Shown here: piece after piece, positions 257-63,913 of the stretch
How positions within the stretch are numbered: the first letter of the stretch is position 1
Layout: each line of letters starts with the position of its first letter
The notes under the pieces: model-generated
Told to the model about the DNA's origin: nothing
The model's input: only the letters and a program-made list of their open reading frames with translations
Database searches by the model: none
Source: Rebecca billardiae RCC1528
Lineage: Eukaryota; Protista; Haptophyta
Direction: 5' to 3'
Assembly (NCBI GenBank): GCA_965240325.2
Contig: OZ251231.1
Span: 806,001-870,000, forward strand
DNA: 64,000 bases
Made by a program: the position numbers and the translations under genes

Positions 257-728
257 TCGGGGGCACGGTAATGATCCGAAGACTGTCAGTGTCACCGGTC
301 TGAGCCGCCTGAATTACGCTAGTGTCTATCTAGTCGTCTTCGGCGCAGCCCGGCAGGCTCACCGTAACTGACTCAGCTGCCGCATGCGGACCTGACGGCG
401 GGCGCTGTCCGCGTTAGCTAATAGCGGCTAGTAGGTACTATACGTACTTACATTGCGGACTTTATAAATATTCGGCGCCGAAGTCTTATGCTGATCGAAC
501 GTCTACTTAGTATTTCGTATTAGTAATATTTAGTATCGCGACTCGGCGACGTATAAACGGCGGTAAAGTGAATCATTATATTGACATTGTCGTCCGGTGC
601 GTATAATGCGGATAATCGTCCGTGATCTGCTCCGACGAGCCTCCGTGACCGAACGAGCATCTAGCCCGTCTCAGTCTCACCAGGGCCTAGCCCTAGTAGC
701 CCTAGGCACTAGCAGCAGCAGCCGATAT

Positions 729-1310
729 TGGCCCGCGATGCAGGGCGGAGTCGCGCACGGTGCAGAGCCCGCAGCGCGGGCTCGAACCTAACGTCGTCAA
801 AAAGATTATTGACCGCTTTGAGTTTGATTACAGGCTCCTGATCCCAGCCCCTGCCGTCGGCCGTCCCGTAGGGACGGGCAGCCGGGCAGCCCGCGGCAGG
901 GCTGCGGCGCACTGCGGGTCGGGCGCACTGCCTGACCTGGTCCGAGTGCCGAGTGGTCGTGGTCGGAAGGCGCAGACACATGTCTCAGTGGCTGCTGACG
1001 CCTGCCCGTTGGCGTTGCATGCCACGTCGTTAAAAAGGGACGGGGGGCGATTTTCAGGGCTGGTGTCACTGTCAGAGACCGATTTTCGATTTCACGAGAC
1101 CGCATTAGCAGGCATCATTTATTTTCTGAGTCAATACAATATTAGCGATCCGGACGCGAAGAGGGCCGATCTGCAGTGGCGATGCACGTCCACGGTCCCG
1201 AGCACTGAGTCGATCCAGTGAAAGCGTGGACGGGGCGTGAGCTCACGTCCAAACACACACTTAACGTAACGGACCGTTACTAACGATTTTTCCGGCGGCC
1301 AATGAGATTG
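729..1310 (+). mobile_element. Degenerate 5' part of the Helitron2/Helentron-like family, with a ~220-bp insertion
   Basis: TGGCCCGCGATGCAGGGCGG...AAAAAGAT and AAAAAGGGACGGGGGGCGATTTT...TTAACGTAACGG match the 5' ends at 7570 and 21342. About 810-1030 is extra sequence. Confidence 0.7.
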
Positions 1311-1590
1311 AATCAAGGAGCGACGACTACGTTTATTATGGCGATTTTGTATTCGGGCTTACGGATACGACGCGGTCAACCGTGACCTCATCATCATTTG
1401 ATTCTACCGCTTCAGTGCTTCGCGTTTACGGCTATATTTAAACCGCACCTGTCATCAATGAATGCGTACCCATAATTATTACGGCCGCCTCGTTACAATC
1501 ATAGTAGTATTGCGGATAGTGACACCGTGTTCGCCGCCCGCCGTGCGCTGCTTTATTTCACGGCGGTCTTCGGGACGCACATCGGACGCG

Positions 1591-2187
1591 ATGCCGCGTT
1601 GCGGGCGGCGCGCCTCCCCCCACGCGGTCAAGTATTGGTCGAAGATTCCGCCCTCGCAGCTGCGCCAGGCCATCAACGATGATGCGCTCACGCTCGGCGT
1701 GGTCGCCGCCCTTGTGATGACCGGCTCGGCCGCGGCGCTCCTGTTCAGCAGCGACGACTTTGCGGAGGAGCTCTCGGAGGGCGCGCGGTGGTGGGTGCAC
1801 CACCTCTACATCGCGTGCAACGTCGTGTCGGTCATGGCGGGGCTGGCGTGCATCTTAATCGGCGCGTACACCGTCGTGCATGGTGCGAAGGTGCACGACG
1901 ACTACTTCTTGGAGTTCGTCGCGCACGTCAAGGGTGACCCCGTGAACGAGGCCGTGGGGTACTTCAATGTCTCGGTCATCGGTTTCGTGCTGGGCGTGCT
2001 GCTGGGCGTGCTGCTCGTCGCGGGCTGGGTGGCGGCGGGGATTGTGTTGCTCATCATACTCGCCTACCTCTCAGCCATTGTGTACAGCACGATCGCCGTC
2101 AACCACGCCAGCGAGGTCCTGATGCGCAAGTATGCAGAGGGGGAACCACCAGCTGTCAAGCACACCACGCCCACGGCGGTATCGTAG
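1591..2187 (+). CDS. Multi-pass membrane protein (about 4 TM, PGG-domain-like layout)
   Basis: Hydrophobic segments LGVVAALVMTGSAAALLF, LYIACNVVSVMAGLACILIGAYTVV and VIGFVLGVLLGVLLVAGWVAAGIVLLIILAYL, with strong GC3 bias. ATG 1591 is preferred over 1462. Confidence 0.7.
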   Translation: MPRCGRRASPHAVKYWSKIPPSQLRQAINDDALTLGVVAALVMTGSAAALLFSSDDFAEELSEGARWWVHHLYIACNVVSVMAGLACILIGAYTVVHGAKVHDDYFLEFVAHVKGDPVNEAVGYFNVSVIGFVLGVLLGVLLVAGWVAAGIVLLIILAYLSAIVYSTIAVNHASEVLMRKYAEGEPPAVKHTTPTAVS

Positions 2188-3024
2188 GGCACTGCGGCCA
2201 TGAGCGTCATCGTGCGGGCCTCCGCGTTCGTCCCGTGATCCTTGGCGGAGTTGGTGCCGCCTAGGACGAGGAGCAGGTCCTAACTCAAGGGCAGGTGGAC
2301 TGGCCGTGGATGACGGATTCACAGGCGAACGGCGGGCAGCGTTGGCGGCGGGCAGGCGCTGCATGCTCCTTCCTTCGCCCCACACGGCACCACCAGGCAC
2401 CACCAGTAGTGATGCTAATGCTGGGTACGGGCGCGGGCGCGAGCGCGGGCGAGGGGCTGAGCTGGCGGCCGCCCGCCCCACCAACCGCACCGGCGCAAGA
2501 GTGAAGTTAATGTCACACTCACAGGTTACCGTATGCCCCTTCAGGCTTCACACTCTTCAGCCTTCTGCGCGGGGCTGAAACAGCACTGATGGGCATGACA
2601 GATGCCTGACACGAAAGCCACGGGCTGATCTGCGAGCGGCGAGTCCGCGACGATGGCGAGGTCGTGGCATATGCTACGGGCGACGCCGTGCTCCCCTCTC
2701 GTCCGTGCTCGCAGTCCCCCGCTCGCTCTCCGGGCCGTCCGGGCCGCGACAACACAGCACAGCGGCCGTCGCGGCGCCCGACGCGCGCAGAGCGGCCCTC
2801 GCGGGCTCGCACATCGACGCGGCGGCGAGGCTGACAGAAAAAGACGGTCGCGATCCAGGATGTCATAACGAGCCGCAGGGAGCCCAGTGTGCCGTGTACC
2901 ACGGGCCACCGTAGTTCGGTGCTGTGCGCCTGAGGCTCGCGCGGGCCCCGAGCTGCGTGAGCGGCGCTGCATGAGCATCTCCGCCGAGAGCAGCAGCAGA
3001 CGCAGTGAATGAGACCGATATATA

Positions 3025-3575
3025 TGACCGCGTTTCGCGGTCCTTTTCCGTAGAACGAACGTAGTTCGGGGCCCGCGGTGGCGGTGCACCCTCCGTCGCA
3101 GTCGTCTATTGACAGACCAGTTGCATGCCCGTACAACTAGACTCCAGCGGCGCGCCGCTGCGCCCCGGTGCCGGCGCCGGGCGCGGGCCCATCGCAGCCG
3201 CCGGCGCCGGCGCCCGGATTGTGTACAGGCGGATGCGACGAGGCGTGATCGACGCATGAGCGCGACTCCACGTGCACGCCAGGCCACGTGGAGCTGACAG
3301 CCAGGGAACACGGTGCGGGGCCGCGGATTCGTTCTGGCCGCTGCTGCTGACCGCGCTGTCTGTCGTCACCGCGCGCCGCCGGGCAGCGCCAGGAGTAGAT
3401 GATTTGCACTGGTCCGAGTAGGGTTCGACCAGCGCCTGCGCGACGGCCGACAGGCGGGCGCGAGGCGTGATCGACGCATGAGCGCAACTCTATCTACGTG
3501 CACGCCAGGCCACGCGGAGCAGACAGCCAGAGGGAGCACTGTGTGTGCCGAGGTGCGAGGGCACCGGTGATTGTT
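3025..3575 (-). mobile_element. 3' part of a Helitron2/Helentron-like element (5'-truncated)
   Basis: The reverse complement matches about 22420-22955, including the subterminal IR and the hairpin GACCGCG-ttt-CGCGGTC at 3026-3042. Confidence 0.8.
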
Positions 3576-4343
3576 ATTCACTCCGCACGCCGGCGGTTGC
3601 ACTGCACGGGGTCACGGGGTGACACACCTCGGTCACGCCGCGGAGAGCCCAGAGCGCCCGCCGCGAGCGCGACGCACTGCTGGGATGTGTTGTACTGGTA
3701 GTGCACTGGCCCTACGAGGCACGCTTTAGCCCACGAGATACGTGCGATGATCATGGGCAGCTGCAGTAATGTCCACAGGTCGATGGTCGTGTGATAGACC
3801 ATGGACTCTCGTGCAGCGGTAGGAAATGGTCTGGATGTGGGCTGCACTCAGGGGAACGCAAGCGCATGTCAGCGTGGCTATCAGTACATCACATCCTAGC
3901 AGTGCGTCGCGCTCGCGGCGGGCGCTCTGGGCTCTCCGCGGCCGTGTGCTCGCAAGGGTCTGCAAGCAGCGTGGAAGGCCGTGGCGTGAACGGTCGCGCG
4001 CGGCGTGGCGACGAGCGGGAGCGCGCGATCGCACACAGACGCGCGGAAGGCGACTGGCATGCCACAGCGCCGCTGCCGCAGCCCACGCGAGGTCGCGAGC
4101 TACTGCCCTTCGGATCGCGAGCCGGCGCCCCCGCGCGCCCCTCGCCGCCGTGCACGAAGATGGGGCGCGCGGAGGCGGCATTTTCGTTTCTAAAAGTTCT
4201 GCCATAGCAAGACGACGAAGGGTGGCCTCGCCACCGCGGCGAGGCCACCCTCGAAGTGGCCTCGCCACCCCGTGCGAAAGTGGCCTCGCCGCGCACGTTT
4301 TCGCTCGAGTGCACTCTGCCACCGTGAGCCTTACGCACGTTAA

Positions 4344-5870
4344 GGTGGCACGGCAGGAAAACCGCGGGACTGCGACGTAACAGCCATGGCTGCCGCTTGC
4401 GCACGCCGATTCGGGGCTCGTGCGCGCCGAGCGCGTACAGCACGGTCCGGAGCGCATGCCGGGTGGTCAAAGCACGTGCGCCGGCCTCCTGGCTCGCCTA
4501 CCGATGAGCTCGTCGCGTCTCTCGTCACGCTCCAGCCGTGGACCAGCATGCACATGTGCGGGTCAGCTGGCGAGCTGCAGACGCGGTGGATGCGCTGCAT
4601 GGTATGTGCGCCACTGGCCGCCCAGATGGTCAGGGCGTACGGGTGCGGACGTGTACACGTGCGTCCAGTCGTTTGAACCGTGCGCCGAGGCCGTTTTGGA
4701 GGTGTGCACCTACTCGCGGATGTCGGCGGCACCCCGTGGGCAGCCCGTGGGGCCAGAGAAGCCGCGACGGGCAGCATTCGGGCGAGGTGTGCATGGCCCC
4801 ATGGCGGCAGAGAACGCCCTGTGCGTACGCTACGGGCTACGCCGAGGTCAGCGATATGGACTTGGCCTGTGTATGGGCCTTGAACAGTCTGCTTGGGGCC
4901 CTACGGAAGTCACCGCGCGTGCGCAGCGTCCCCGGTGCCCAATAGTAGGCTATACGCGGCATGCCAAAACTCGAAATCTTTTATAGAACTTCAACTGTGA
5001 CCCTATCTACCCTCGAGCTCTTCCCATAAGCTGTGCTTAGCCAGCTCGGCATGCGAATCGGGTTGCACGTTCTGAAATTAACACGAAAATGGTCCAAAAT
5101 CGCCGATTTTGGACCATTTTCGTGTTAATTTCAAAACGTGCAACCCGATTCGCATGCCGAGCTGGCTGAACACAGCTTATGGGAAGGGATCGAGAGTAGC
5201 TAGGGTCCCGGTTGAAGTTCTATAAAAGATTTCGAGTTTTGGCATGCCGCGTATAGCCTACTATTGGGCACCGGGGACGCTGCGCACGCGCGGTGACTTC
5301 CGTAGGGCCCCAAGCAGACTGTTCAAGGCCCATACACAGGCCAAGTCCATATCGCTGACCTCGGCGTAGCCCGTAGCGTACGCACAGGGCGTTCTCTGCC
5401 GCCATGGGGCCATGCACACCTCGCCCGAATGCTGCCCGTCGCGGCTTCTCTGGCCCCACGGGCTGCCCACGGGGTGCCGCCGACATCCGCGAGTAGGTGC
5501 ACACCTCCAAAACGGCCTCGGCGCACGGTTCAAACGACTGGACGCACGTGTACACGTCCGCACCCGTACGCCCTGACCATCTGGGCGGCCAGTGGCGCAC
5601 ATACCATGCAGCGCATCCACCGCGTCTGCAGCTCGCCAGCTGACCCGCACATGTGCATGCTGGTCCACGGCTGGAGCGTGACGAGAGACGCGACGAGCTC
5701 ATCGGTAGGCGAGCCAGGAGGCCGGCGCACGTGCTTTGACCACCCGGCATGCGCTCCGGACCGTGCCGTACGCGCTCGGCGTGCACGAGCCTCGAATCGG
5801 CGCGCGCAAGCGGCAGCCATGGCTGTTACGTCGCGTCCCGCCGGTCCGGGCGATTTCCTGCCGTGCCACC
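4344..5870. mobile_element. 1527-bp palindromic (foldback) non-autonomous DNA transposon, Kolobok-like, copy 1
   Basis: TTAA|GGTGGCACGGCAGGAAA ... TTTCCTGCCGTGCCACC|TTAA, with TSDs at 4340-4343 and 5871-5874. The arms are near-perfect inverted repeats centred on 5103. TTAA plus GG termini fits Kolobok rather than piggyBac. Confidence 0.85.
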
Positions 5871-5965
5871 TTAAAACAAATAAATTATAACTCTGGATCC
5901 TCCGGACGTCCCCGTCCGTGGGCACCGCTGTCCGGAAACGAGAGCCACGTCCGCCCGTCGCAACG

Positions 5966-7198
5966 ATGGCGATCGTCCGCGTGCTCGCACGCGAGGCACA
6001 CCGAGCATGCACCGATTACGACTCAGGCTGGTTCCCGCTGATCGCAGCGAGCCTTCTCTGCGCAGAAGCCGCCCTAGGCGCTGCAATCATCCGTCGCGTG
6101 CCCTACACGGAGATCGACTGGGAGGCGTACATGGATGAGGTGGGCACGATACTCTCCGGCGACTTTGACTACACGCATGCGCGCGGAGGGACAGGCCCTC
6201 TCGTGTATCCCGGCGGCTTCGTGCTCGTGTACTCGGCGTTGTACAACCTCACTGGCGGGGGCGTGGACATCCGATTGGCGCAGTACATCTTCCTCCTCGC
6301 GTACCTCACGACGCTTGCACTCGCGCTCGATGTGTACCGACAGGCGCGCGTCGCGCCGCCGTGGACAGTCGTGCTCCTGTGCCTGTCGAAGCGCGTGCAC
6401 TCGATCTACATGCTCCGCCTATTCAACGATGGCATCACCACACTCCTCTTGTACGCCGCGCTCTCTCAGCTCTCGCGCGACCGATGGGCGATCGGCTGCA
6501 GCCTGTACTCGCTCGCTGTGAGCGTCAAGATGCACCCGCTGCTGTGCGCTCCCGCGCTCTTCGTGCTGCTGTGGAAGCGCGGCGGCGCGCGCTTCGCCGC
6601 CCAGCACGTCGGGCTCTGCGCTGCGATCCAGCTCACCATCGGCGCGCCCTACCTCGTCACGAACGCGCGCGGTTACATCTCGCGCTCGTTTGAGCTCGGC
6701 CGCGTGTTCCTGTACAAGTGGACGGTCAACCTGCGCTTTCTGCCAGAGGCGGTCTTCGTCTCGAAGCGGCTGGCCGCGGCGCTGCTTGCTGGGAACGCGC
6801 TGACGCTGCTCGCCCTCGGCCACTGGCGATGGTGCCGCCGCGAAGGCGGGCTGCCGGCGCTCTTGGCCACGCGTGCGGGCGCGCAGCACGCGCAGCGCCT
6901 CAGCGCGCGCGAGGTGGTGCACACAATGCTAGTCGCCAACTTTGTCGGCATCGTCTTCGCGCGCACGCTGCACTACCAGTTCTACTCGTGGTACTTCCAC
7001 GCGCTGCCGCACTTGCTCTGGTCCCTGCCCATACCCACCGCCTCTCGCCTCCTGCTGTTTGCGGCAATCGAGTCCGCGTGGAACGTCTACCCGCCTGCGG
7101 CCGTCACGTCTCTGGCGCTGCTCGGCTGCCACATCGGCATCCTCGCGGGCCTCAGCTGGGGTGCGCCATCGGCGGCGCCGACGCAGCACACGCTGTGA
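5966..7198 (+). CDS. ALG3: Dol-P-Man:Man5GlcNAc2-PP-dolichol alpha-1,3-mannosyltransferase
   Basis: Motifs VPYTEIDWEAYM, GGTGPLVYPGG, SKRVHSIYMLRLFND, SVKM, FLYKWTVN and RTLHYQFYSWY; intronless. Confidence 0.95.
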   Translation: MAIVRVLAREAHRACTDYDSGWFPLIAASLLCAEAALGAAIIRRVPYTEIDWEAYMDEVGTILSGDFDYTHARGGTGPLVYPGGFVLVYSALYNLTGGGVDIRLAQYIFLLAYLTTLALALDVYRQARVAPPWTVVLLCLSKRVHSIYMLRLFNDGITTLLLYAALSQLSRDRWAIGCSLYSLAVSVKMHPLLCAPALFVLLWKRGGARFAAQHVGLCAAIQLTIGAPYLVTNARGYISRSFELGRVFLYKWTVNLRFLPEAVFVSKRLAAALLAGNALTLLALGHWRWCRREGGLPALLATRAGAQHAQRLSAREVVHTMLVANFVGIVFARTLHYQFYSWYFHALPHLLWSLPIPTASRLLLFAAIESAWNVYPPAAVTSLALLGCHIGILAGLSWGAPSAAPTQHTL

Positions 7199-7914
7199 CC
7201 ACATGCACGCGTACATCGCAGTGCGCCGGGCCGCGCGGCCGCGGCCCAGCCGCCCCGGCCCGTTCGCCCCGCGCTAATAAGATGCCAGCGGGCGCGGCGC
7301 CGTCCGAGCCCGAGGACTCCGACTCCGAGACAGTCTGTAGTACTGTAGTCTGACGCGCCGCCGACTGCTTCTTAGAAGTGCTTATAATATCTATATGTCT
7401 AGTAGTCAACGCAGTCACTCCGCCGAGGCTCCTGGGACGCGGAGTCTTATTAGCTTAGTACGTAGTAGACGAGTAGTAGTGTTAGTACGCGGAATCGGGT
7501 CTCAGAGTCAGACTGGGTCTGTGAGAGTCTGGTATGACTACACTGTGCTGTATAGTCGCAGTGTAGTTATGGCCCGCGGTGCAGGGCGGAGCGCGCAGCG
7601 TGGAGCCCGCACCAGCGGGCCCGAACCACGTTTCAAAAAGATCTTTTATCTAGAAAAAGGGACGCGGGGGCCGATTTTTAGGGCTGGCGGAGACCGAGTT
7701 TTGATTTTTGAGACCCTCTCTGTGACACACGCATCACGGAGAAAAAAATCGCGCCCACGAGATTCCCCTAATCAATCGTGGACGGCCGGGCGTGAGAGTT
7801 CACTTCTGTGTGAAGTAGGACGGTTACAAGTCCAATACAAGCGTCAGCTTCTTTGCGAGGCTATTTTTGCACGTCCTTACGGGATCAGCGAAGTAACCAA
7901 CCGATATATATTGG

Positions 7915-8068
7915 CTTCGTCGGGGTCGTATTCACTACTGGAGAACATTTGCACCGCGCTTCGTATTCATATGTATGGTTCACGCAGGCATAAAATCGCT
8001 TCGTCGGGGTCGTATCCACTATAGGCACTATACTGGAGAACATCATTTGCACCGCTTCGTTTTCATAC
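7915..8068 (+). repeat. Two imperfect direct repeats (GCTTCGTCGGGGTCGTAT...CTGGAGAACA...TTTGCACCGC)
   Basis: Copies at about 7915-7970 and 7998-8068. The continuation (TATGGTTCA) reappears at about 16466, after the nested element. Confidence 0.75.
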
Positions 8069-8229
8069 ATTATGACCGCGTTCCGCGGTCCTTCCATAGA
8101 ACCAACGTAGTTAGGGGCCCGCGGTGCACCCTCCGTCGGCATATGCTGTCCGTCCAACGCGCGGCCGTAGCGGCAGCAGCAGCGCGGAGCGCCGTCGAGC
8201 ACGCGCGGCAAACGAATAATGGAATATTA

Positions 8230-9340
8230 TGCAGCGCGGGCGAGTCGACGGTCTGGAAAATGCGCGATCACGCCACAGCAGGCTGGCAGAGCCCGCCCGA
8301 GCTGCAGCATGCGCCGTAGGTGCTGCCCCAAGCTCTCGACTGCCCGTAAGCGGCGGCATGTGCGGCGGCGCCGGCGGCGGCCATGCTGCCCCGCCGTTGC
8401 GCGCCGCGGGGCGCTGCCGGCACCTCCGTGGTGAAGCGCACAGCGCTCGAGCCCACAGGGGCTGGCGACCGTCAAACCGACACCCCATGACGCGGGGCTG
8501 CGTGTGCCAGCTGCGCGCACCCCCTGGGCCCACCTGGCCCGCTCGAGCAGCTCGCGCCTTGGGTGCGCACAGCGGCTCGAGCATACCGTGGTATGGGACG
8601 CCTGCTGCGGTGCCGCCGAGCACGTGCGGCCGAGGGTCACGCAGCACGGGCGACTCGACGGCGGCGAGCAGGCGCGACGGCCTCGCCGCGCCGCGGTAGA
8701 GCCTGCCCGGGCTGCAGCACGCCGTAGGAGCAGCCCAGCGCCCTCCTCCGCCCTCCAGCTTCGGCGCGCGTAGCAGGCCCGGCGGCGGCCATGCTGGCGT
8801 GCCCAAGCAAGCAGGCAGATGGGCGCGGCCGGCCGCGCCGTCGCAAAGCGCGCAGAACTCGAGCTCGGGGGGGCGGACGGCCGCCAAACTGGCGCCGCAG
8901 GACGTGGCACTGCGTGCGCCAGCTGCGCGCACCCGCTGCGCCCGCGTAGCCCGTGCGAGCGCCGCGCCTCGAGCACACGCCGCAGCAGCTCGACACAGCC
9001 ACTGCAGCGCGCACGCAGCCTGCACGCCGTGGCCCGTCGGCATCTTGGAAGCCGCCGAGAGCGTGTGCTTTCCCCGCACGACGGCGGTAGCTGCCGCGAT
9101 GTATACGAGCGTGCTGCCGCGCCGGCCGCCGCTGCCCGGCCGCCGCGCCGGCCTCCACTCCGCGCCCGCTGCGCGTCCGCAGCTGGCAGCTGCGCTGCTG
9201 CGCCCGCTGTCAGCCGGCGGCGGTGGCTGCCCGCGCTCGCTGGGCGACCACTCGATGATGCGCGCAGCGTAAAGTGCGCGCTGGGCACCTCCTCGTCGCG
9301 TGCAATTTCGAGGTAGTCCTGCATCTGCTCCTGCATCAGC
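8230..9340 (-). pseudogene. Degraded coding-like cargo inside the inner Helitron2-like element
   Basis: Protein-like patches in shifting frames (MQEQMQDYLEIARDEE, YAARIIEWSP, PELEFCALCDG, GVPYHGMLEPLC). No family recognised. Confidence 0.3.
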
Positions 9341-9634
9341 CCCTCCCACCCTGCGCGCGGGCGCGGACGGAGTCGCACGCACGCGGTCCGATCGACGATC
9401 GATCGAGGGCGCGGCGGCCGCGGCACGGGACGGGCGTCGACGCGCAGGTTAGTTAGGTATGGTGCCGGCGCTTCCCGCAGGCGTTGCGCGCTTGGGGCGA
9501 GTGGGGCGCGTGGGCGAGACCAGCAGCCAGCCAGCCCACGCCACCGGCGCGAGGGCACCGGCGCGGCGCGCACGCCTTTGCACGGCATCCTCGCCCGCTG
9601 CCTCGGGCGTGTCGCCTCCCGCAAACGCTGGCGG

Positions 9635-9837
9635 GCGGGTAACCTGTTTTCACAAGCGCCTCTCTTTCATTATGGGCTTATGGCACAGGACGAGGTTCAT
9701 CCATCGAGGCAAGCGGGTAACTGGCTTGAAATAGCGCTATTCAAAAGAATCTCTTTCAATATTATGAGGAGGTTCATCCATCGAGGCAGGCGGGTAACTT
9801 GGTTGGACAAGCGATATTGAAAAGAATCTCTTTTAAT
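9635..9837 (+). repeat. ~78-bp tandem repeat (GGTTCATCCATCGAGGCA.GCGGGTAAC...TATTCAAAAGAATCT) that continues at 16042-16115
   Basis: Units at about 9691, 9769 and 16050. The array is interrupted by the CACAGTG transposon. Confidence 0.85.
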
Positions 9838-10114
9838 CACAGTGCAGAAAAACGGCACAGGGTGACGTTTTAAGTTGTCCGCACCACTAGGCGAGTCATC
9901 GAAAAATTCTGAAGCGGCGCGCCTAAATTCGGCGCACCCTAGGCGCGTCGAATCGTGGCACAGACCTTGGTGCCAGGCCCCTCCCTGGCGCGCTGCGCGC
10001 GCGCCGACGCCCGCGCGGCGCGGGCAAAAAATCACTCCGACCAGCACTGCGCATGCTGCGCCGGCGAGCAGATCGAGCGGAGCCGACCAGATGACGAGCG
10101 GCGACGACGCCCGC

Positions 10115-11013
10115 CTACAGCTCGATGCGCTCGTGCTGTCGCTTGATGATGCCGCCCTCCCTCGCCCGTTTCTCCTTGGCTTCGAGATGCTGGACGCCGC
10201 CGAGCCGGCGAGCCGCGTAGCGGACGAGATCATTCGTGTTCACGAGGAACTCTTTCAGGTACAGCCGCCGCGCGATCTGCAGGAGGTAGTTCGACTTGAC
10301 CATGTACTGCACGATGGTGCTGCCCACCGTGCGGACGTGCAGGCCGATCGGCACGCCGGTCGAGTTGCGCTTGTACATGCGGCGCGCCCGGCTGCCCTTG
10401 AGCTCCTGCCCGTCCTCGCGCATGAAGACCACCTTCTTGCCGTGCCGCCGGATGCAGGCCGGCGCGTCCCACACGCTGTCCGCGATGTACACCGAGAAGC
10501 GGTCGGTCGTGGCGACGGTGTAGAAGGCCGCCGCCCACTCCTTCGCCAGTTCGTGCGCCTTGTCCGCATGCGCGTCACGCCCGGTCTGCGTCGAATCGTC
10601 GTAGTCGATCTTCTCCCAGTGCCAGTGCATCGCGAACAGCGCGTTCCAGACGTTGACGATCATCGGCATCAGGTCCTCCTTCGTCGCGCTCTTGGCGAGC
10701 TCGGCGAGCTTGCGAGGCGCGACGCCGGCGGTTGCAGCGAGCTGCGCGTCGTCACGCTCGAGCATCTCGCCAACGACCGAGTCGGCGTCATCGTCGTCGT
10801 CGTCGTCGTCGTCATCGTCGTTGTGCGCGCGCTCGGCTGAGGCGTGGATCTCAGCCGCCGCCGCCGCCGCAGCTGCTCGCACCGTCGCCGGATCACGCGG
10901 CTGCCGCGGCGGCGGGCGGCGGACAGCCGAGGTCAGCGGCTCTGCGGCCCCGTCGTCGTCGTCGTCGCTGCCACCGCTCGAATGCCCGTCGTCGTCTTCG
11001 TCGTCGCCGTCGT

Positions 11014-11060
<47 letters not shown>

Positions 11061-12550
11061 GACTCGGCTGCCGCCGCCGCCGCCGCCGCCGCCGCCGTGA
11101 CGCGCGCGGTGCTCGGTGGCTCGTACTGCTGCGACACGATGTCGATGATCTGCTTGAGCGCGTTCGCGTTGCAGCGGAGGTGGCCAATCTCGCGGCCGAT
11201 CACCTTGGGCATGTCCACCTTCCCTCCGCGCGACGGCGGCAGGCGGCAGCGGAAGCCGATCCCTCTCAGGATCTTGACGACGTCGTACATCATGCAGCGC
11301 ATGTGGAGCTGGCTCGCGCCGTGCCGCCGTTTGATCATGTTCCAGATCGTGTGCTTGAAGGTGTGCTTGAAGGTGTTCTCCACGCCGTGCAGCAGCGGGA
11401 AGAGCACATCGTCGATGCGCTTGAGCCAGATCACCGGCGGCGACTCCTGCCCGCCGTGCTGCTCGACGTGGTCCAGCCACCCGCCGTGGTCGTCGTCGCG
11501 CATCTTGTGCAGCTTGTCGCGCGAGTCCTTGGCGGCGGCGGCGTTGGCGAACTTCACCTTGCAGCACGGGCACTCGAAGGGCTCGTTCTCGTGGCCCGGC
11601 ACCGGCGCGTGCGCGGCGTTGAAGCAGTACTCCATGGTGCGCCAGCTCGGCTCCGCCGTCGCCGGCTCCTTCCGGCCGTTGGTGCGACGGATGAACGGCT
11701 TCCTGCCGTTGTGCTGCGACACGCCGAGCACGCCGCGCGCGAACTCGCTGTCGCCGTTCAGCAAGAACTCGAGGTGGACGCAGCAGGAGCACTCCGAGTC
11801 GCACGGGTCGCGGTCGGGGTCCTCCACGCAGAGCTTCTTCACGCGCGTCATCTCGTACAGCACGTTGTACTCCGACCCGAGCGCGCCCGCCAGGTCGTGG
11901 TCGGAGCCGTCGAACACCGCGATCGTGTGGAAGTTGTTGGGCGCGCAGTAGCCGACGGTGAGCCCGGCGTCGCGCACGCAGATGATGGTGATCGAGTGGT
12001 TGCGGGCGACCTCGAGCGCGTCACCGCTGAGCGCGACGGAGAAGGGCTTCTTGACGAACTGCTGCTTGTCCAAGCCCGAGCCCTTGAGCGCGAGCTCCCA
12101 CGCGCGGTAGACGGCGCGCCGCACCGAGAGCGTGCACGTCTTGCCGTCGTCCTCGAGCACGATGCCCGCCTCCTCCGCCCACTGTGTGATCACCTTCTTG
12201 ACGCGTCCCCAGGACGGCCAGAGCGGGGCGTACACGCCGGGCATGATCTCGATGCGCTCGAACTTGCCGGTCGCGATGTTCACCTGCTTGCCCGTCATGT
12301 TGCGCGCGCAGATGTAGGTGTCCTGCGTCCAGTCGTTCATGATGACGATGGCCGCGAAGAGCTCGGGCTTGTACACGCGCTCCTCGATGGCGGTGATGAG
12401 AGCGCGGCGCACGTCCTGGTCGTGGCGGAGGAGCGACTCCGTGCGCATGATCTGCCGCGCAAAGTCGCCGCCGGACCCCACGTCGAGGAGGATCTTCGCC
12501 ACCTGGCCCGGATTCTGCGAGCGAAGGTACGCCTTGAGATTGAGGACGCC
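10115..12550 (-). CDS. Catalytic core of a RAG1/Transib-like transposase
   Basis: Collinear RAG1-like motifs: SVALSGD (D1, 12020-12022), DGSDHD (RAG1 DESDHE), LNGDSEFARGVLG (D2, 11750-11752), GQESPPV, FPLLHG, VIGRE, SVYIADSVWDAPACIRRHG and EDGQELKGSRARR (E, 10403-10405). Confidence 0.8.
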
Positions 12551-13636
12551 CCGTGCTCACGCGCTGCCGCACGGCGCGCGGATGCTGCGAGTGCTGCCCG
12601 CCGATCACGCGGAGCGGGTTGGCCGACGGGTCGATGGCGTGATTGGCCGCGACCTGCTCGGTCTGGCCGGCGCGACGAGCTTGCGCCTTCCGAGCTCGGT
12701 CAGATGCCCGCCTGCACTCCCCCTGCGCGTCCTTCAACTTCCTCTCGAGCGTCGCCACCTTGGCCAGCATCTTGTCGTCGCGCGTCCTCGTCAAACTCAC
12801 CTCGGCCATCACCTCGGTGAGCTCGGCCTCGACCAAAGCCAGCTCCGGGACCAGCGAGTGGACGGTCGACTCGAGACGGCGCACGTCCTCGTCCAGGAGG
12901 GACACGCGGCCCAGCACGTCCATCTTCTCCTGCTCCGACACCGCCGCCTCCTTCCGCAGCTCCTCGATCAGCCGGTCGCGCAGCTCCATCGTCGCCTCGA
13001 GCTCGGCAGCGCGGTGCAAGGCCGTCTGGTACGTCTCCACGGTGGTGTTGAGCGTGTCGGGCGTGCCGACGTCGACGAGCGCCTGCAGAGCGACGAGCTT
13101 GTCGTGCAAGTCGGCCACCACGTGGCGCTGCTTCTTCAGCTCGAGCACCAGCTTGTCGTTGTACTCGGCGGTGGTCATGCCCAGGTCGCGCGGCAGCGGC
13201 GGCTCGTAATTCTCGTCGTGGTGGCCGAGCGCGGCGCGAGAGCGCGTGACCGCCGGCAGCGGGGAGGCGAACGGCGGCGGCGACGACGGCGGGGAGGCGA
13301 CGGCGGCGGCGGCGGCAGCGGCCGGCACCGTGGGCGGGGTTGGCGGGGCCGGCATGGCTGGCGGCGACGCCGGCCCGTCTGCGTCCACCTCGATCGGCTG
13401 CGCCGGGTTGACGGCAGCATCGCCGGGTGGCGGCTCGTCGGGCGCGCAGTCGTCTGTGTCAGACTGCTGTTCGTGTGATGCCTTTGCCTTGGCGGCGCGG
13501 ATCGATCTTGCCCGCTTCGACCGCGTGTTGAAGCCAGGGGTTTGCCGCCGCCACCGCCTCTTGGACGAGCCGTGCCCTGTCGCACGCGCACCGGGGTCGT
13601 CGGGCAAGCCCGACGACCCAGCACCGGCGCTCACGC
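12551..13636 (-). CDS. Basic/Pro-rich plus coiled-coil N-terminal region of the transposase, joined to the core across a 1-bp frameshift
   Basis: Heptad-rich stretch LVLELKKQRHVVADLHDKL...VATLERKLKDAQ. Removing one G from GGGG at about 12549-12552 gives QRVSTGVLNLKAYLRSQNPGQVAKILL. A CGCGCAG acceptor lies at about 13637. Confidence 0.6.
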
Positions 13637-14748
13637 CTGCGCGCGAGCACGCGCGGCCGCGGCGCAGCGCGGGGGCGGCGCGCGGCGCGCGGCGGTGAGC
13701 GTGGGCGGGCGCGGGCGCGGGCGGGCGACGGGGCGCGCGGGCGCGCGCGAAGACGCGCCGGCGCGTGCGCGCCGCGCGCGTCGCGCCGACGTACCCGCGG
13801 CTGCGTCCATCCCACCTACGCCCACCTGAGCGCCCGCGCTCGCGTCGCGTGCGCTCGGCGCACCTGCCGCCGTCGCGCAGGCGCGGCGTGTGGCGCGGCG
13901 CGCAACGCCGGAGCGGCGGGCGGCGGTGAGCGCGGGCGGGCGCGGGCGGCGGGGCGCGTGGGCGGGCGCGAGGACGAGCCCGCGCGCGCGCGCCGCGCGC
14001 GTCGACGTACCCGCGGCTGCGTCCACCCGGCCCGCGCCCGGCTGGGCGCCCGCGCTCGCGCCGCGCGCGCTGAGCGCGCCTGCGCGCGAGCGCGCGCGAC
14101 CGCGGCGCGGGGGCGGCGCGCGGCGGTGAGCGCGGGCGGGCGCGGGCGCGGGCGGGCGACGGGGCGCGCGGGCGCGCGCGAAGACGCGCCTGCGCGCGCG
14201 CGGCGGCGCGCGCGTGGCGCGCGCGGCGCGTCGACGTACCCGCGGCTGAGTCCACCCGGCCCGCGCCCGGCTGGGCGCCCGCGCTCGCGCCGCGCGCGCT
14301 GAGCGCGCCTGCGCGCGAGCGCGCGCGACCGCGGCGCGGGGGCGGCGCGCGGCGGTGAGCGCGGGCGGGCGCGGGCGCGGGCGGGCGACGGGGCGCGCGG
14401 GCGCGCGCGAAGACGCGCCTGCGCGCGCGCGCCGCGCGCGTCGCGCCGACGTACCCGCGGCTGCGTCCACCCCGACCGCGCCCAGCTGGGCACCCGCGCT
14501 CGCGCCGAGCGCGCTGAGCGCGCCTGCGCGAGAGCGTGCGGCCGCGGCGCGGGGGTGGCGCGCGGCGCGGGGGCGGCGGGCGGCGGTGAGCGCGGGCGGG
14601 CTCGGGCTCGCGCGGGCGATGGGGCGCGTGAGCGCGCGCGAAGACGCGCCGGTGCGCGCGCGCCGCGCGCGTCGCGGCGACGTACCCGCGGCTGCGTCCA
14701 CCCGGCCCGCGCCCAGCTGGGCGCCCGCGCCCGCGCCGCGCGCGCTCA
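13637..14748 (-). repeat. Five ~215-230-bp GC-rich tandem units, each resembling a 69-nt exon plus an intron
   Basis: The plus-strand anchor GACGTACCCGCGGCTG occurs at about 13788, 14004, 14233, 14448 and 14679. On the minus strand each unit has an acceptor-like GCAG|G and a donor-like GCCGCGG|GTACGT. Confidence 0.75.
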
Positions 14749-15530
14749 CATCTCGGCCGGGCCGCTCGCCGACTGCTGCAGCCGCGCCTGCCGGTCCTGC
14801 CGAAGGATGGTCTGGCAGATGGCGTCCAAGCGAGAGTCGTACTGCTGGCCCCGCTGCCCCGCCTGGTACGGAATCGTTCGCAGCCGCTCCTTCAGCCGCC
14901 GCAGCTGCTTCGCGCGCAGCTCCTTCTCCAGGCCCGTCGGCATCGAGATGCGGCCGTCGGTGTGCAGCGTCGCGGCCCACGCCTCCCATTGCAGCCACTC
15001 CCTCCGCCCGATGGTCGTCGGCCGGCGCTTCCTCGTGTGAGTGAGGCGCAGGCGCACGAGCACGTTGTAGTTGCCCATCGGCGTGCGGCGCGCGTTCCCC
15101 ACCGCCGTCTTTGTGCGCGGGATCGACGTGTGGAAGCCACAGACGCTCTCGAGCACCTTCGGGTCCGTCAGATCGATCGTGAAGACGTCGCGCACCGCCG
15201 AGTGCAGGTCGGAGGCCTCCTCCGCTCGGTCGTCGATCAAAGCCTGCGGGCGCTTGCCCAGCAGAGCCTCCACCATGTGCGCGAACACCGGGAAATCGTA
15301 CGGGTCCCAAACCCCCCGAACGAAGCCACGGCAGGCCTTGAAACGCACCTGCTGAAGGGCGGTCCAGATTCGCCTGCGCAGACCCGAGATGTGCAAATCC
15401 ACGTTGATCAGCGCGAGAACCTTGTGGGCTGGCGGCGGCGGCAGGCGCGGCCGGCCGCGCTTGCCCCCGCGCGCCTTGCCCGCCGCCTTCCGCCGCGGCC
15501 GGCGCTTGTAGTCCTTGCTCCAGTCTGAGC
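14746..15530 (-). CDS. Upstream transposon-encoded ORF or exon of unknown domain (SDWSKDYKRR...LRQDRQARLQQ)
   Basis: About 260 aa of globular-looking sequence with coding bias inside the TIRs, preceded by a CGCGCAG acceptor at about 15531. The true start is uncertain. Confidence 0.6.
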
Positions 15531-16654
15531 CTGCGCGGCGCGGCGATGCGAGCGCATGCGGGCCGAGACGCAGTTCAGTGTACGCGTGCAATTTCACAGC
15601 CTCCCACACAATTTCAGGAGGGTGAGACGCACCGCCAGCGGCACCCGCACACAATCCCACCCTGCGAGAGCCACCTGCCACGTCTGCTGAGGCATCAGGC
15701 TCGGTCGCACTCGCGCGCGGCGCGCCAGCGAGCAGCGCGGCGCGCACCGTGCTTGCTGTGACGGCGAAAGCGGGCCATCCATCCGGTGTCGAGGGAGAAC
15801 TCGCGCGCTGCGCGGACGAGATCAGCACCCCACTCGAACGCGTAGTCAGGCCCGCGCGCCCCCGCGCCGTTCTTGGCCGCGTGCGCGCGCGCTGCTTTTG
15901 GGGGCAAGCTCTTCCGCCCGCGGCTCGCGAAGGTTGGCGGAAGGCGCGCGGCCGGTTGGCAACCCTCCCAGATGGCGATCTGAGCGACTCCGGGCTGCGG
16001 ACCGACCGGAACGTCATGGAAAATCCCGATTCTGCACTGTGATATGACGAGGCGGTTCATCCATCGAGACAGACGGGTAACGTATTTGAACAAGCACTAT
16101 TCAAAAGAATCTGGCTTCATAGCTGTTTTCGACCCAAAACAATCAAACGTCGCTCGGCAAACTCGTACTTCAGCATACAAGAGGGATAGGAATACTCACT
16201 TGTTTCACCCCCGGGGTATCTGATCCCACGTCCGTCCATAGTAGATACAAGAATTGCAGCGGGCGCGGCCTTTTAAGCTGTGATGGACAGCATACCCCCC
16301 CTCAAAAAGTCGAAAACTCACCCTCCAACAGCCCTCAAAATCGTCCCCCATGCCCTTTTCTTTGATCAAAAGATCTTTTTGACAACGTAGTGAGGGCCCC
16401 CGGCGGGGCTCCACGCTACGCGCTCCGCCCTGCACCGCGGGCCAGCACCGCGGGCCATAATGTATATGGTTCATGGACTGCTACGGGGTCGAGCAGAATA
16501 TCATCGATATTTATCAGGCGCACGTGTGCGTATTCATCATCAGCCTTCGGGAATTGGGAGTAGCTATTGGCCTTTTGCCCTCTGGCGAGCCAGTTGTGCG
16601 CACTTGAGCAGGCCTTGAGCAGGCTCGAGGCCACTTTTTTGCGCTCACGTGGAC

Positions 16655-26270: not shown

Positions 26271-26358
<88 letters not shown>
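26271..26358 (+). repeat. (AG)n microsatellite, about 44 units
   Basis: Directly visible. Confidence 0.97.
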
Positions 26359-60660: not shown

Positions 60661-61394
60661 CGACGCGCACACGGATAACTGACGGCAGTGGATAACGAGC
60701 GCCGAGTGGCCTGGAGCCCACGCGGTCCGCTCACAGCTAATGCTCGCATAGCAGGCACTGTTTCTTGGCCCGACAGCCCCGCCCGGCCCACTCGGCTGAG
60801 TTTGACTGACAGACTGAGACTCTTAGGCTTAGCAGCTAGGTTTGAAAACAGACTACGCCGATACAGTATCGAGGGGAACCGAGGCCCAGAGCGGAGCCGA
60901 GCGCCCTGTCTGAATCAGGTGGGGGCACCCTGACAGCGGACGACATTGTTTGTAGTACTGCTTACGCGACGACAAGTTTGGCACTCTTCTCACTTAGACA
61001 CCGCGAACTGGCACTGAGAAGTGGCACTGGCAGCCGACTACTTCGATGCAAGGCGCGTGATGGCTTTACGTCGGTACTGACGCGTCGTTTAGTCTTACTC
61101 GTTTGACTTTAAAGTAGTATGTTGAGCTGACGAGGCCAGGGGCGCGCATCTCAGCAGATGGCGTCGCCGGCGGTGAGTCAGGGCCGGTGCTGCAGCAGGC
61201 AGACCGGCGGCGCAGCTGCTGCAGAGCAGCAGTGCGGATGAACTGGCACAGTCTGGGGCACGCATCTCAGCAGATGGCGTTGCCGCTGGGGTGTCAGGGC
61301 TGGCGCCGCATCAGGCGGGCCGGCAGCAGCAGCTGCTGCGGAGCAGTGGCTGGCAGCGCGCGCGTCCAGGACGCGCGCGGCAGCAGACGCGCGA

Positions 61395-61710
61395 GCGCGG
61401 AGCAGCGCGGGCGCAGCGGCGCGGGCGCGGAGCAGCGCGGGCGCAGCGGCGCGGGAGCGCGGAGCAGCGCGGGGCGCGCGGAGCAGCGCGGGCAGCGCGG
61501 AGCAGCGCGGAGCAGCGCGGAGCAGCGCGGAGCGCGCGGAGCAGCGCGGAGCAGCGCGGAGCAGCGCGGAGCAGCGCGGAGCAGCGCGGAGCAGCGCGGA
61601 GCAGCGCGGAGCAGCGCGGAGCAGCGCGGAGCAGCGCGGAGCAGCGCGGAGCAGCGCGGAGCAGCGCGGAGCAGCGCGGAGCAGCGCGGAGCAGCGCGGA
61701 GCAGCGCGGG
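61395..61710 (+). repeat. 10-bp minisatellite (GGAGCAGCGC)n, roughly 30 units, degenerate at the left
   Basis: Directly visible. Confidence 0.95.
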
Positions 61711-62480: not shown

Positions 62481-62760
62481 CCGAGCGCCGGGTGGCTGCA
62501 CGGCAGCTGACGGCGGCGACGGCGGGCTCGGCGATCTACTCGGAGGGGCTGGCTCATCAACCTGTCCGGTGGTCTAGGGCACCGGATGGCGGCTGGCAGC
62601 TGGACTGGGTTTTGCGGTCCGGCTGGCACGGCTGGCACGACCGGACTGGACACAGGTCCGGCGGTTGGCACACCCGGATCTATCGGAATCGTCCGGGTGG
62701 AATCTGGCGACACGAGCGCCGTTACGGCGGCGGGCAGTGCTTGGCACTGGTCCTACGCCG

Positions 62761-63010
62761 GCAGCTGACGCGAGGCGCAGCTGGCAGTGCCACCGAGATG
62801 GCGGCGCTGGCGCGACTGTTGAGTCGCGGGAATCGCGCGCGCGCGAGGCGCGAGCGCGGGATCATGACGGGGCGGCGCAGCGGTGCCGAGACTACGTCTG
62901 CAGCTGACGCGAGGCGCAGCTGGCAGTGCCGCCGAGACGGCGGCGCTGGCGCGATCTTTGAGTCGCGGTATCCGCGCGCGCGCAAGGCGCGAGTGCGGGG
63001 TGACGGCGGG
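62761..63010 (+). repeat. Two imperfect ~140-bp-period direct repeats (GCAGCTGACGCGAGGCGCAGCTGGCAGTGCC...)
   Basis: Copies start at about 62762 and 62900. Confidence 0.8.
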
Positions 63011-63605
63011 GCAGTGCATGGCACTCGGCCCACGCCGGGAGGTTCAGCTCGATTCCATGCTGCGGGCCGAGATCATTCGGCGGCAGGTGGGGACCCGACG
63101 CTGAGGCGTCGGAAGCACACGCACGGCGCAGGACGCCGGTGCGGCGTGTGTGCGCGCAGCAGCGCGCGGCAGTGGCTCGGCGGCGCTGGGCGCACCGAAC
63201 CAGGTGGTCGTACGCCCGGTGGTGGCGGCGGCACCCACACGTCCACGCACGAAGCTCATCGCCTGGCTCAGGCGGCGGTGGCGACGGCGGGGATCGTGGC
63301 GGCGGCCAAGACGGCGGAGAGATACCGACTGGCTGCGAGGGCGGAGGAGGCAGCGGCGGCGGCGATCAGCGCGCGCCGCGCGCGGAGCAGCTCCGTGGCT
63401 TCAACGTACTCTGGTACGTATGTCGTGTAGACGACGGACGTCTCTTCACTTGCGTGACGTACGCATCGACGAGACCGACCTGGTCGAGGGGGGGCACTCG
63501 TCGCTGGGCGCACCTGACGGTGGCGCGTACGTGGGTGATGGTGACGGCGCCGCGGTAAGCGGCGGACATCGTCCAGTCGGCGGTGACGCCGACGGTGAGG
63601 ACGAG

Positions 63606-63913
63606 GACGGCGACGGCGGCGAGCAGCCAGCCGACGCCGGGAATGACGACGCGACAGAGTTCGACGTCGGGTACGACGACGACGCAGATGCGTCAACGTC
63701 GGGGCGCGGGCGCAGCAGCGTGGACGCGGGACAGCGCGGGTGCAGCAGCGCGGGCGCGGATGACGGCGACGGCGGCGAGCAGCCAGCCGACGCCGGGAAT
63801 GACGACGCGACAGAGTTCGACGTCGGGTACGACGACGACGCAGATGCGTCAACGTCGGGGCGCGGGCGCAGCAGCGTGGACGCGGGACAGCGCGGGTGCA
63901 GCAGCGCGGGCGC
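63606..63913 (+). repeat. Near-perfect 156-bp tandem duplication
   Basis: GACGGCGACGGCGGCGAGCAGCC... starts at about 63606 and 63762. Confidence 0.9.

Follow-up and report, generated by a model that had tools for sequence, protein, structure and literature searches.

A transposon with RSS-heptamer ends probably belongs to a rare, apparently undescribed lineage of the CACTA–Mirage–Chapaev–Transib clade rather than to Transib

Introduction

Does a transposon that ends in CACAGTG, the heptamer of the recombination signal sequence (RSS), have to be a relative of the V(D)J recombinase? The question is raised by a locus at positions 9838 to 16041 of the 64-kb stretch of DNA analyzed here (the window). 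The initial annotation called it a RAG1/Transib-like transposon, placed it in a lineage far from animals, and considered it possibly relevant to the origin of V(D)J recombination.

The CACTA–Mirage–Chapaev–Transib (CMCT) clade comprises EnSpm/CACTA, Mirage, Chapaev, Transib/RAG1, Plavaka, ESTA, and Lanisha, and its members share the D, D, and E residues together with two Cys and three His, CA..TG termini, and duplications of 2 to 5 bp (Kojima 2025, PMC12730594). Transib is the only superfamily with 5-bp target-site duplications, and 5 bp defines both Transib and RAG transposition (PMC1131882). CAC..GTG termini and 2- to 3-bp duplications are published features of EnSpm/CACTA; in animals, both EnSpm elements and related MITEs have been described that end in CAC..GTG and make 2-bp duplications (PMC6004678). 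In Repbase, Mirage and Chapaev are treated as part of EnSpm, a merger based on weak similarity.

Results

The locus is a bounded element that interrupts a host tandem repeat. The interval from 9838 to 16041 is a 6,204-bp element bounded by a perfect 12-bp inverted repeat, CACAGTGCAGAA, which lies at 9838-9849 on the plus strand and has its exact reverse complement at 16030-16041. The inverted CACAGTG ends had thus been read correctly. Allowing up to one mismatch, CACAGTGCAGAA occurs at just these two sites in the 64-kb window, where 0.18 would be expected by chance. Beyond the 12 bp, each end continues with a 13-nt spacer, TGACGTT (positions 26-32 of the repeat), 7 nt, and GTCCGCA (positions 40-46), so that the terminal inverted repeats span 9838-9883 (plus strand) and 15996-16041 (minus strand), with the same blocks at the same spacing. 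Because the two ends are spaced alike, there is no 12/23 asymmetry; an A-rich nonamer is likewise absent from both. The terminal 350 bp of the element show no enrichment for CACTA-type subterminal repeat arrays. A single copy of the element is visible within the window. The genes around it indicate no more than a GC-rich eukaryote whose ORFs are long and uninterrupted.

A host 77-bp tandem repeat (9689-9837) breaks off exactly at the left end and resumes at 16049-16120. Its units start at 9689, 9766, and 16049, and the spacing across the insertion, with the element subtracted, is 79 bp compared to 77 bp. The element is flanked by AT on the left (9836-9837; TTTTAAT/CACAGTG) and on the right (16042-16043; CACTGTG/ATATGAC), a putative 2-bp target-site duplication. 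By itself this AT copy is not decisive, since AT is palindromic and the paralogous repeat units vary at this AT-rich spot: measured against neighboring repeat units, a 0-bp duplication fits about as well as a 2-bp one.

The element encodes a transposase and a second conserved protein. A minus-strand ORF running from 12556 to 10118 has 813 codons when counted from the stop before it (795 amino acids in the ORF list, which starts it at a GTG). All eight peptide motifs quoted in the initial annotation lie within this one ORF in the order given: SVALSGD (residue 173), DGSDHD (216), NGDSEF (267), GQESPPV (369), PLLH (387), VIGRE (452), YIADSV...ACIRRHG (690-706), and REDGQE..KGSRARR (713-726). We assign 10115-12514 (minus strand, including the stop codon) to transposase exon 2, with a predicted RNase H-like DDE core and a Cys/His module. 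Residue mapping and conservation nominate, all on the minus strand, D179 (12022-12020), D269 (11752-11750), and E718 (10405-10403) as candidate catalytic residues and C329/C332 (11572-11561), H390 (11389-11387), and C701/H705 (10456-10442) as candidate zinc ligands. The translation also contains a poly-Ala/Gly/Asp low-complexity insert at about 10720-11120 on the same strand.

Upstream, the frame-1 translation of 12561-13178 (minus strand, ATG at 13178) gives an N-terminal coiled-coil region, transposase exon 1, for which Pfam returned weak coiled-coil-type matches only. A putative 46-nt GT..AG intron (GTGAGC...TCGCAG; 12515-12560, minus strand), read from the sequence and frame maps, would join this coiled-coil exon to the frame-2 transposase exon, the alternative being a frameshift. 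In relatives P0001, P0002, and P0004, the coiled coil and the core lie within one ORF, and P0013-16 also carry the N-terminal coiled coil.

ORF1 (14746-16017, minus strand; 423 codons in the ORF list) is the second element-encoded protein. In its conserved stretch (about 14800-15290) it has a homologue in the related element L001, namely the gene that lies upstream of the L001 transposase (BLASTP against L001:906-1547: E 3e-15, 26% identity). ORF1 matched nothing in Pfam, Kelch included, had no detectable relative outside the family, and showed no homology to the ~246-amino-acid accessory ORF of elements of the sister subfamily described below. It is the sole other conserved ORF, and a RAG2-like gene is absent from the element. 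Between ORF1 and the transposase gene lies an internal tandem repeat (13557-14750; ~84% G+C) of ~5 copies of a unit of ~216-231 bp (TRF consensus, 229 bp).

The family is rare, mobile, and matches no Pfam family. An exhaustive phmmer search of 1.84 billion protein cluster representatives recovered 9 relatives (best E 1.8e-15), all of them metagenome proteins without names. P0013-17 were added by a word-indexed search with a sister-subfamily protein as the query; together with P0009 they make up that sister subfamily. Word-indexed searches found nothing with the N-terminal core of the window protein and nothing beyond one already-known member with a family profile. No relative was found among IMG/VR viral contigs, and Foldseek against BFVD gave no match below E 0.09. 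Three metagenome contigs with the bipartite end pattern (L005, L006, and L007) show no DNA or protein similarity beyond that pattern and were set aside as chance or unrelated.

Pfam scans covered the transposase (whole and in halves), the coiled coil, ORF1, every relative, and the accessory ORFs at related loci, and they returned low-complexity, coiled-coil, and C2H2 noise only; a match of P0009 to DUF1280, a Caenorhabditis elegans family and the sole hint of a link to Mirage, of which C. elegans MIRAGE1 is a reference, was nonsignificant (E 0.011). Even at E values of up to 10, no family member matched Pfam RAG1/Transib or the plant CACTA transposase (Transposase_21). Against all PDB sequences, phmmer and three family profiles hit C2H2 zinc fingers matching the PxxCPxC module only, and no transposase.

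Two of the related elements, the 5.9-kb copies L002 and L004, are 99.5% identical and have different flanks. Hence, the family is mobile.

Conserved residues and the predicted fold point to the CMCT clade. The family alignment shows D179, E718, and C329 without exception and C332 with almost none. The fragment P0006 is the only sequence in which D269 and H390 are not conserved, and H316 and H705 are invariant wherever the column is covered. The subfamilies differ in how the presumptive zinc ligands are arranged. In the sister subfamily, the second D is followed by C(2)C at +19/+22, and H(4)H precedes E by 20 residues. RAG1 has the same spacings, D-(19)-C(2)C and H(4)H-(20)-E. In the window's subfamily, no canonical C(2)C directly follows the second D; its C(2)C (C329/C332) lies ~60 residues downstream of that residue, within a C2H2-finger-like module. 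P0002 and P0013-16 have H-x4-H; the window protein and P0001 have C-x3-H.

We searched two independent AlphaFold models, of the window protein and of relative P0002, with Foldseek. The window model has a pLDDT of 54 overall, about 65-85 in core residues 40-450, and <50 in the C-terminal part that bears E718. Its secondary-structure elements are predicted to run beta1-beta2-beta3-alpha1-beta4-alpha, which puts D179 in beta1 and D269 directly behind beta4. All 44 top PDB matches of this model were HzTransib, RAG1, or BbRAGL (6pqx, E 3.1e-4; 6cim, probability 0.99), as were all 46 top matches of the P0002 model (6oep, E 1.5e-5, probability 1.00). TM-scores in these matches were 0.15-0.25 and rmsd was high because both models are mediocre. 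The order of the secondary-structure elements and the positions of the two aspartates fit a putative RNase H-like fold related to RAG1/Transib, for which the Foldseek matches also speak at these low TM-scores and with the E718 region poorly modeled. Together with the conserved D, D, E and Cys/His residues, the two models bear out the earlier assignment to the DDE transposases of the Transib/RAG1/Chapaev/CACTA radiation, and the comparison with RAG1 core and HzTransib that had been proposed for it returned only those proteins and BbRAGL as top PDB matches. CACTA, Mirage, and Chapaev have no structure in the PDB, so a best match to RAG1/Transib cannot place the family within the clade.

Duplications of 2 bp flank elements across the family. 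Could the target-site duplications place it? All seven family elements start with CAC and end with GTG. Identical dinucleotides flank six of them: the window element (CACAGTGCAGAA; AT), L001 (CACAGTGATCCGA; AG), L004 (CACAGCGTTCCTC; TT), L002 (CACAACAAATCCG; TT), L010 (CACGACAAATCAG; GA), and L011 (CACAACACTTCC; AT). The seventh, L009, has CT on one side and AT on the other, a mismatch. With a chance of 1/16 for each match, six of seven has a binomial probability of about 4e-7. No element has a 5-bp duplication, and in all of them the five flanking bases are unlike on the two sides (window, TTAAT/ATATG; L001, TGCAG/AGCTG; L004, CGTTT/TTTGG).

The exact CACAGTG heptamer is present in the window element and L001. 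The other five elements open with CACAGCG, CACAACA, or CACGACA, so that conservation goes no further than CAC(A/G). The one constant part is CAC, and the same holds for the CMCT clade as a whole. The reading of CACAGTG as an RSS heptamer therefore holds as an exact match in the window and fails as a family trait, being carried by just two of seven related elements.

Discussion

From its 2-bp rather than 5-bp duplications we conclude that the family is probably a rare, apparently undescribed branch of the broad CMCT clade and is neither Transib nor a RAG ancestor. The element at 9838-16041 is probably an intact, apparently autonomous cut-and-paste DNA transposon of this clade, CMC-like, from a rare lineage that Pfam does not detect. 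Fold and motifs place it in the CMCT clade. The length of its duplications, which are of the 2-bp EnSpm/Mirage type, and the symmetry of its ends align it with the CMC side and not with Transib/RAG. Given the ends, ORFs, conserved residues, and fold-level match that we observed, and the 2-bp duplications seen in relatives, transposition may be pictured as follows. The transposase probably oligomerizes through its coiled coil and probably binds the ~46-bp imperfect terminal inverted repeats. It would use the conserved acidic residues in catalysis and the Cys/His residues to hold zinc, cut at the conserved 5'-CAC...GTG-3' termini, and reinsert the element into a target cut with a 2-bp stagger, which would leave the 2-bp duplication. 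The window element, with the proposed splice site in use, may be active at present.

The family resembles described members of the clade in its conserved D, D, E and Cys/His ligands, with positional variations, in its 5'-CA..TG-3' termini, and in duplications within the 2- to 5-bp range. As with ESTA, a link to RAG1 emerges only in structure-aware comparison. The family differs in having no sequence-level similarity to any member compared, in its family-wide N-terminal coiled coil, in the ~60-residue displacement of C(2)C in the window's subfamily, and in the C-x3-H that replaces H(3-4)H in the window protein.

Could the element simply be one more copy of an EnSpm/CACTA, Mirage, or Chapaev family that Repbase already lists and Pfam misses? 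The invariable CAC...GTG termini and 2-bp duplications are those described for animal EnSpm elements and related MITEs (ENS1_Cis, CMC-NA MITEs; PMC6004678), and the breadth of an EnSpm group into which Mirage and Chapaev were folded on weak similarity leaves room for such a copy. The layout is also alike: a two-gene element of several kilobases with internal repeats. CACTA elements carry two genes, and Mirage, like the window family, makes a 2-bp duplication. Against this stand the failure to match any Pfam entry, the plant CACTA transposase included, at E up to 10; the recovery of just 9 unnamed relatives from 1.84 billion cluster representatives; terminal 350-bp regions without subterminal repeat arrays; and an ORF1 without a detectable relative outside the family. 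The coiled coil and displaced C(2)C are also missing from the cited CMCT descriptions, which is an absence of evidence only. On balance we consider a known family unlikely. The lineage appears to be undescribed as judged against Pfam, the PDB, and the cited papers. Since the family is rare and without a Pfam match, the undescribed branch proposed by the initial annotation remains plausible; its emphasis on a lineage far from animals is weakened by the RAG1L/RAG2L transposon of the alga Aureococcus and the Transibs of bacteria, plants, and fungi (Tao 2022, PMC9435367).

We think it distinctly improbable that the window subfamily and the P0013-type sisters form a deep, independent CMCT lineage that branches beside Transib/RAG1 and not inside CMC. 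If they did, a RAG1-like catalytic and zinc architecture and CACAGTG ends would coexist with 2-bp integration and symmetric ends, and the family would provide an outgroup against which to ask how a 5-bp stagger, ends of the 12/23 type, and the pairing with RAG2 arose.

Is the family instead a true member, or the immediate sister, of Transib/RAG1, with a heptamer inherited from the RAG/Transib ancestor and a bearing on the origin of V(D)J recombination? HzTransib, RAG1, and BbRAGL are its sole significant PDB fold matches, but no CMC structure was there to compete for them. The CACAGTG of the window element and L001 equals the RSS consensus, and each end is bipartite in that a spacer separates the terminal block from a second one. 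The sister-subfamily spacings equal those of RAG1, but such spacings and Cys/His motifs are common to the whole CMCT clade. Compared with HzTransib, ProtoRAG, and AanRAGL, which share the D, D, E and zinc-ligand arrangement, the family makes 2-bp duplications (six of seven elements, 5 bp never) where 5 bp is the Transib/RAG hallmark, has symmetric ends in place of 12/23 asymmetry, and lacks the A-rich nonamer, a Kelch or RAG2-like gene, and any HMMER-detectable similarity to RAG1 or Transib by phmmer, family profiles, or Pfam. We therefore regard membership in Transib/RAG1 as highly unlikely, and the original label of a RAG1/Transib-like element is not supported.

A last reading would make the locus immobile, with 12-mers that pair by accident in DNA rich in GC and in repeats and with an ORF that is a host gene or spurious. 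In its favor, the high GC content of the region produces numerous long ORFs that are spurious, along with weak inverted repeats by the hundred, but this reading is effectively refuted by near-identical related copies in different flanks and by homologues at ~25% identity bounded by CAC(A/G) inverted repeats and 2-bp duplications, and it is at odds with a 12-mer pair unique in the window and placed exactly at the break in the host repeat, the conserved candidate catalytic residues, and the specific fold match.

What, then, does a rare branch of the CMCT clade with such ends mean? The picture of V(D)J origins is unchanged because algal RAG-like transposons and bacterial Transibs had already been published, and the relevance claimed for the locus in this respect is modest. 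A RAG1/Transib-like fold and an exact RSS heptamer coexist here with 2-bp duplications; hence, end sequence alone is no evidence of RAG ancestry. The presumptive zinc ligands, canonical in the sister subfamily and moved in the window's, amount to a natural experiment on what the zinc module does. To the clade behind RAG1, the family adds a rare protist-borne lineage whose copies are intact, whose ends are defined, and whose second gene is conserved. Its value is moderate and for specialists, as a possible new transposon tool or phylogenetic outgroup.

Ends and insertion site of the window element

In the initial annotation both ends of the DNA transposon at window positions 9838-16041 (6,204 bp) begin with one and the same sequence, and this is confirmed: CACAGTGCAGAA occupies 9838-9849, and positions 16030-16041 carry its perfect reverse complement. 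These were the only two matches to the 12-mer in the window when up to 1 mismatch was allowed (0.18 expected by chance). Both ends share, at identical spacing, the 12 bp, a 13-nt spacer, TGACGTT, 7 nt and GTCCGCA. The element interrupts a host 77-bp tandem repeat whose units lie at 9689, 9766 and, beyond the element, 16049. The dinucleotide AT stands on each side. By itself, this pair is poor evidence for a target duplication, being a palindrome at an AT-rich variable spot of the host repeat.

The neighboring genes in the window point to a GC-rich eukaryote whose ORFs are long and uninterrupted; these genes include those for ALG3, a MUS81/EME1-type nuclease, an ABC transporter, a C2-domain protein and PhyH. 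The window also contains a perfect (AG)44 microsatellite (26271-26358), a 320-bp tandem repeat (27695-28882; 3.7 copies, 96% identical, 83% G+C) and a 10-bp tandem repeat, AGCGCGGAGC (61394-61709; ~32 copies). A strong GC skew extends from 61 kb to the window end, where a 139-bp repeat (62753-63012; 1.9 copies, 87%) and a perfect 156-bp tandem duplication (63606-63913; 2.0 copies, 100% identical) are found.

Two genes on the minus strand

All eight previously noted peptide motifs were present, in the order described, in a single minus-strand ORF of 813 codons that runs without interruption from 12556 to 10118. A coiled-coil coding stretch on the same strand, with its ATG at 13178, is in a different frame. 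A putative 46-nt GT..AG interval (GTGAGC...TCGCAG, minus strand, 12560 to 12515) would join the two frames exactly, and relatives carry coiled coil and core within one ORF. We infer one spliced transposase of ~1,000 aa.

ORF1 (423 codons, minus strand, 16017 to 14746) adjoins a tandem repeat at 13557-14750 (unit ~229 bp, ~84% G+C). It is homologous to a gene upstream of the transposase on metagenome contig L001 (E 3e-15); hence, the two-gene layout is conserved within the window's subfamily. By analogy with two-gene CACTA elements, ORF1 may have an accessory role in DNA binding or regulation; no feature detected in it points to either.

Relatives and conserved residues

A Pfam search with the transposase and its parts matched no family, and a PDB sequence search with the same queries returned low-complexity matches only. 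Exhaustive phmmer comparison with 1.84 billion cluster representatives yielded nine related proteins (best E 1.8e-15 and 3.3e-15), all unnamed, from metagenome assemblies and without a Pfam domain. A sister subfamily (proteins P0013-P0017, P0009 and P0008) was reached via a protein on one fetched contig. The N-terminal coiled coil occurs in both subfamilies.

Conservation was counted over all sequences covering a given column. D179 (SGD/ADS) and E718 (GQE/GLE) of the window transposase are invariant, while D269 (GD.xF) is kept in all except the fragment P0006. Of the cysteines, C329 shows no variation and C332 almost none. Two histidines, H316 and H705, are the same in every sequence that covers them, and a third, H390, is kept everywhere except in P0006. 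In the sister subfamily a C(2)C follows the second Asp at +19/+22, and an H-x4-H precedes the Glu by 20 residues. The window's subfamily, which has lost this first C(2)C, retains a PxxCPxC module further downstream; in this subfamily the motif 13 residues ahead of the Glu is C-x3-H in the window protein and P0001 and H-x4-H in P0002.

The PxxCPxC module (11480-11575), between the second Asp and the Glu, is invariant and present in all relatives. It matches C2H2 zinc-finger chains of multi-finger proteins in the PDB (E 3e-8 to 6e-7). It looks like a finger inserted into the catalytic domain, and in the subfamily that has lost the canonical C(2)C it may have replaced the latter in binding zinc.

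Mobility and target duplications

We sought inverted repeats around the transposase genes, flank identity not being a criterion. Besides the window element (flanks AT/AT), this gave elements at L001:323-5189 (CACAGTGATCCGA, AG/AG), L004:7580-13527 (CACAGCGTTCCTC, TT/TT), L002:13135-17484 (CACAACAAATCCG, TT/TT), L010:9670-13977 (CACGACAAATCAG, GA/GA), L011:1202-5489 (CACAACACTTCC, AT/AT) and L009:5388-9687 (CACGACAAATCA, CT/AT), all on metagenome contigs. Flanking dinucleotides are identical in six of the seven (1/16 each by chance; binomial ~4e-7). None of the seven has a 5-bp duplication. A 3-bp duplication is ruled out in six, and the L004 flanks (TTT and TTT) fit 2 or 3 bp. Only two of the seven carry the exact RSS heptamer, CACAGTG; what all share is CAC(A/G).

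Two 5.9-kb copies from one sample, L002:7025-12956 and L004:7585-13527, are 99.5% identical with different flanks. We conclude that the family is mobile. Both ends of the L004 copy read CACAGCGTTCCTC; the L002 copy has other sequence at its left end in place of the initial five bases, CACAG.

On L001, an outer inverted pair, CACAGTGACAGT (1 mismatch; at 22 and 5272), brackets the 323-5189 element; the flanks outside this pair, TA and AC, form no duplication. The autonomous element may sit within a MITE-like relative of ~380 bp whose ends are likewise CACAGTG. On L010, the sister-subfamily element has a Ty1/copia-type retrotransposon polyprotein (gag, integrase, RVT_2; 5744-9772) immediately upstream, and a cytosine DNA methyltransferase gene stands at the start of the locus. 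Given this polyprotein, sample ERZ25071359 comes from a transposon-rich eukaryote.

The bipartite end pattern (CACAGTGCAGAA, 13 nt, TGACGTT) was also matched on metagenome contigs at L005:11635-11666, L006:1164-1195 and L007:6521-6552. L005 and L006 share the same locus, each ending ~1.1-1.2 kb inside. Beyond this pattern, none of the three resembles the window element in DNA or protein; the matches are due to chance or belong to the ends of an element that is unrelated or non-autonomous.

Predicted fold and mechanism

An AlphaFold2 model of the window protein (9 sequences; mean pLDDT 54) reached pLDDT 65-85 over most of residues 40-450, and its C-terminal third was poor. The predicted order, beta1-beta2-beta3-alpha1-beta4-alpha with D179 falling within beta1 and D269 immediately behind beta4, is the RNase H-like pattern. 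A Foldseek comparison had been proposed in the initial annotation; run against the PDB, it gave 44 top matches, all HzTransib, RAG1 or BbRAGL (6pqx, E 3.1e-4; 6cim, probability 0.99; 6pqy, probability 1.00), the next being Hermes, a hAT transposase, at E 0.35. For P0002, a distant relative that was modeled independently, there were 46 top matches, all to the same three proteins (best E 1.5e-5, probability 1.00). We treat the match as specific at the level of predicted models; TM-scores are low (0.15-0.25), and it is no proof that the catalytic residues converge.

The transposase probably multimerizes via its coiled coil and probably binds the ~46-bp imperfect inverted repeats. It would cleave at the CAC/GTG termini, with candidate residues D179, D269 and E718 coordinating metal ions, and the excised element would be inserted across a 2-bp staggered cut. 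Excision may proceed via a hairpin on flanking DNA, as with RAG, Transib and hAT enzymes.

Placement of the family

Is this a Transib? The defining features of Transib are a 5-bp duplication and ends built of heptamer, spacer and nonamer with 12/23 asymmetry (PMC1131882). Here the duplication measures 2 bp, and the window element has symmetric ends; the family is not Transib by this definition. Nor does the fold match place it beside Transib: the PDB holds no structure from CMC, the non-Transib side of the CMCT clade, so RAG1/Transib is the expected best match for any CMCT member. The reading initially proposed, a RAG1/Transib-like element that bears on how V(D)J recombination arose, is unsupported, given that duplications are 2 bp long, the ends are symmetric, no RAG2-like gene is present and sequence similarity is lacking. 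Its presence far from animals is also less surprising than assumed, since the alga Aureococcus has a published RAG1L/RAG2L transposon that makes 5-bp duplications, and bacteria, plants and fungi have Transibs (PMC9435367).

The broader assignment to the Transib/RAG1/Chapaev/CACTA radiation was right. CMCT comprises EnSpm/CACTA, Mirage, Chapaev, Transib (with RAG1), Plavaka, ESTA and Lanisha. Its members have in common D, D and E together with 2 Cys and 3 His, CA..TG termini and 2-5-bp duplications (Kojima 2025, PMC12730594); the window family, with the zinc-ligand variations given above, conforms to this description. ESTA was itself recognized solely via an HHpred match to RAG1 (PMC12730594). 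Chapaev duplications are 3-4 bp (PMC4079192); CAC..GTG termini with 2-bp duplications, as found here, are described for EnSpm-type elements (PMC6004678). The main uncertainty is that Repbase might already contain the family under EnSpm. Because relatives are extremely rare, no Pfam model applies, the N-terminal coiled coil is conserved and the zinc ligands have shifted position, it is plausible that the family represents, as first suggested, an undescribed branch of CMCT.
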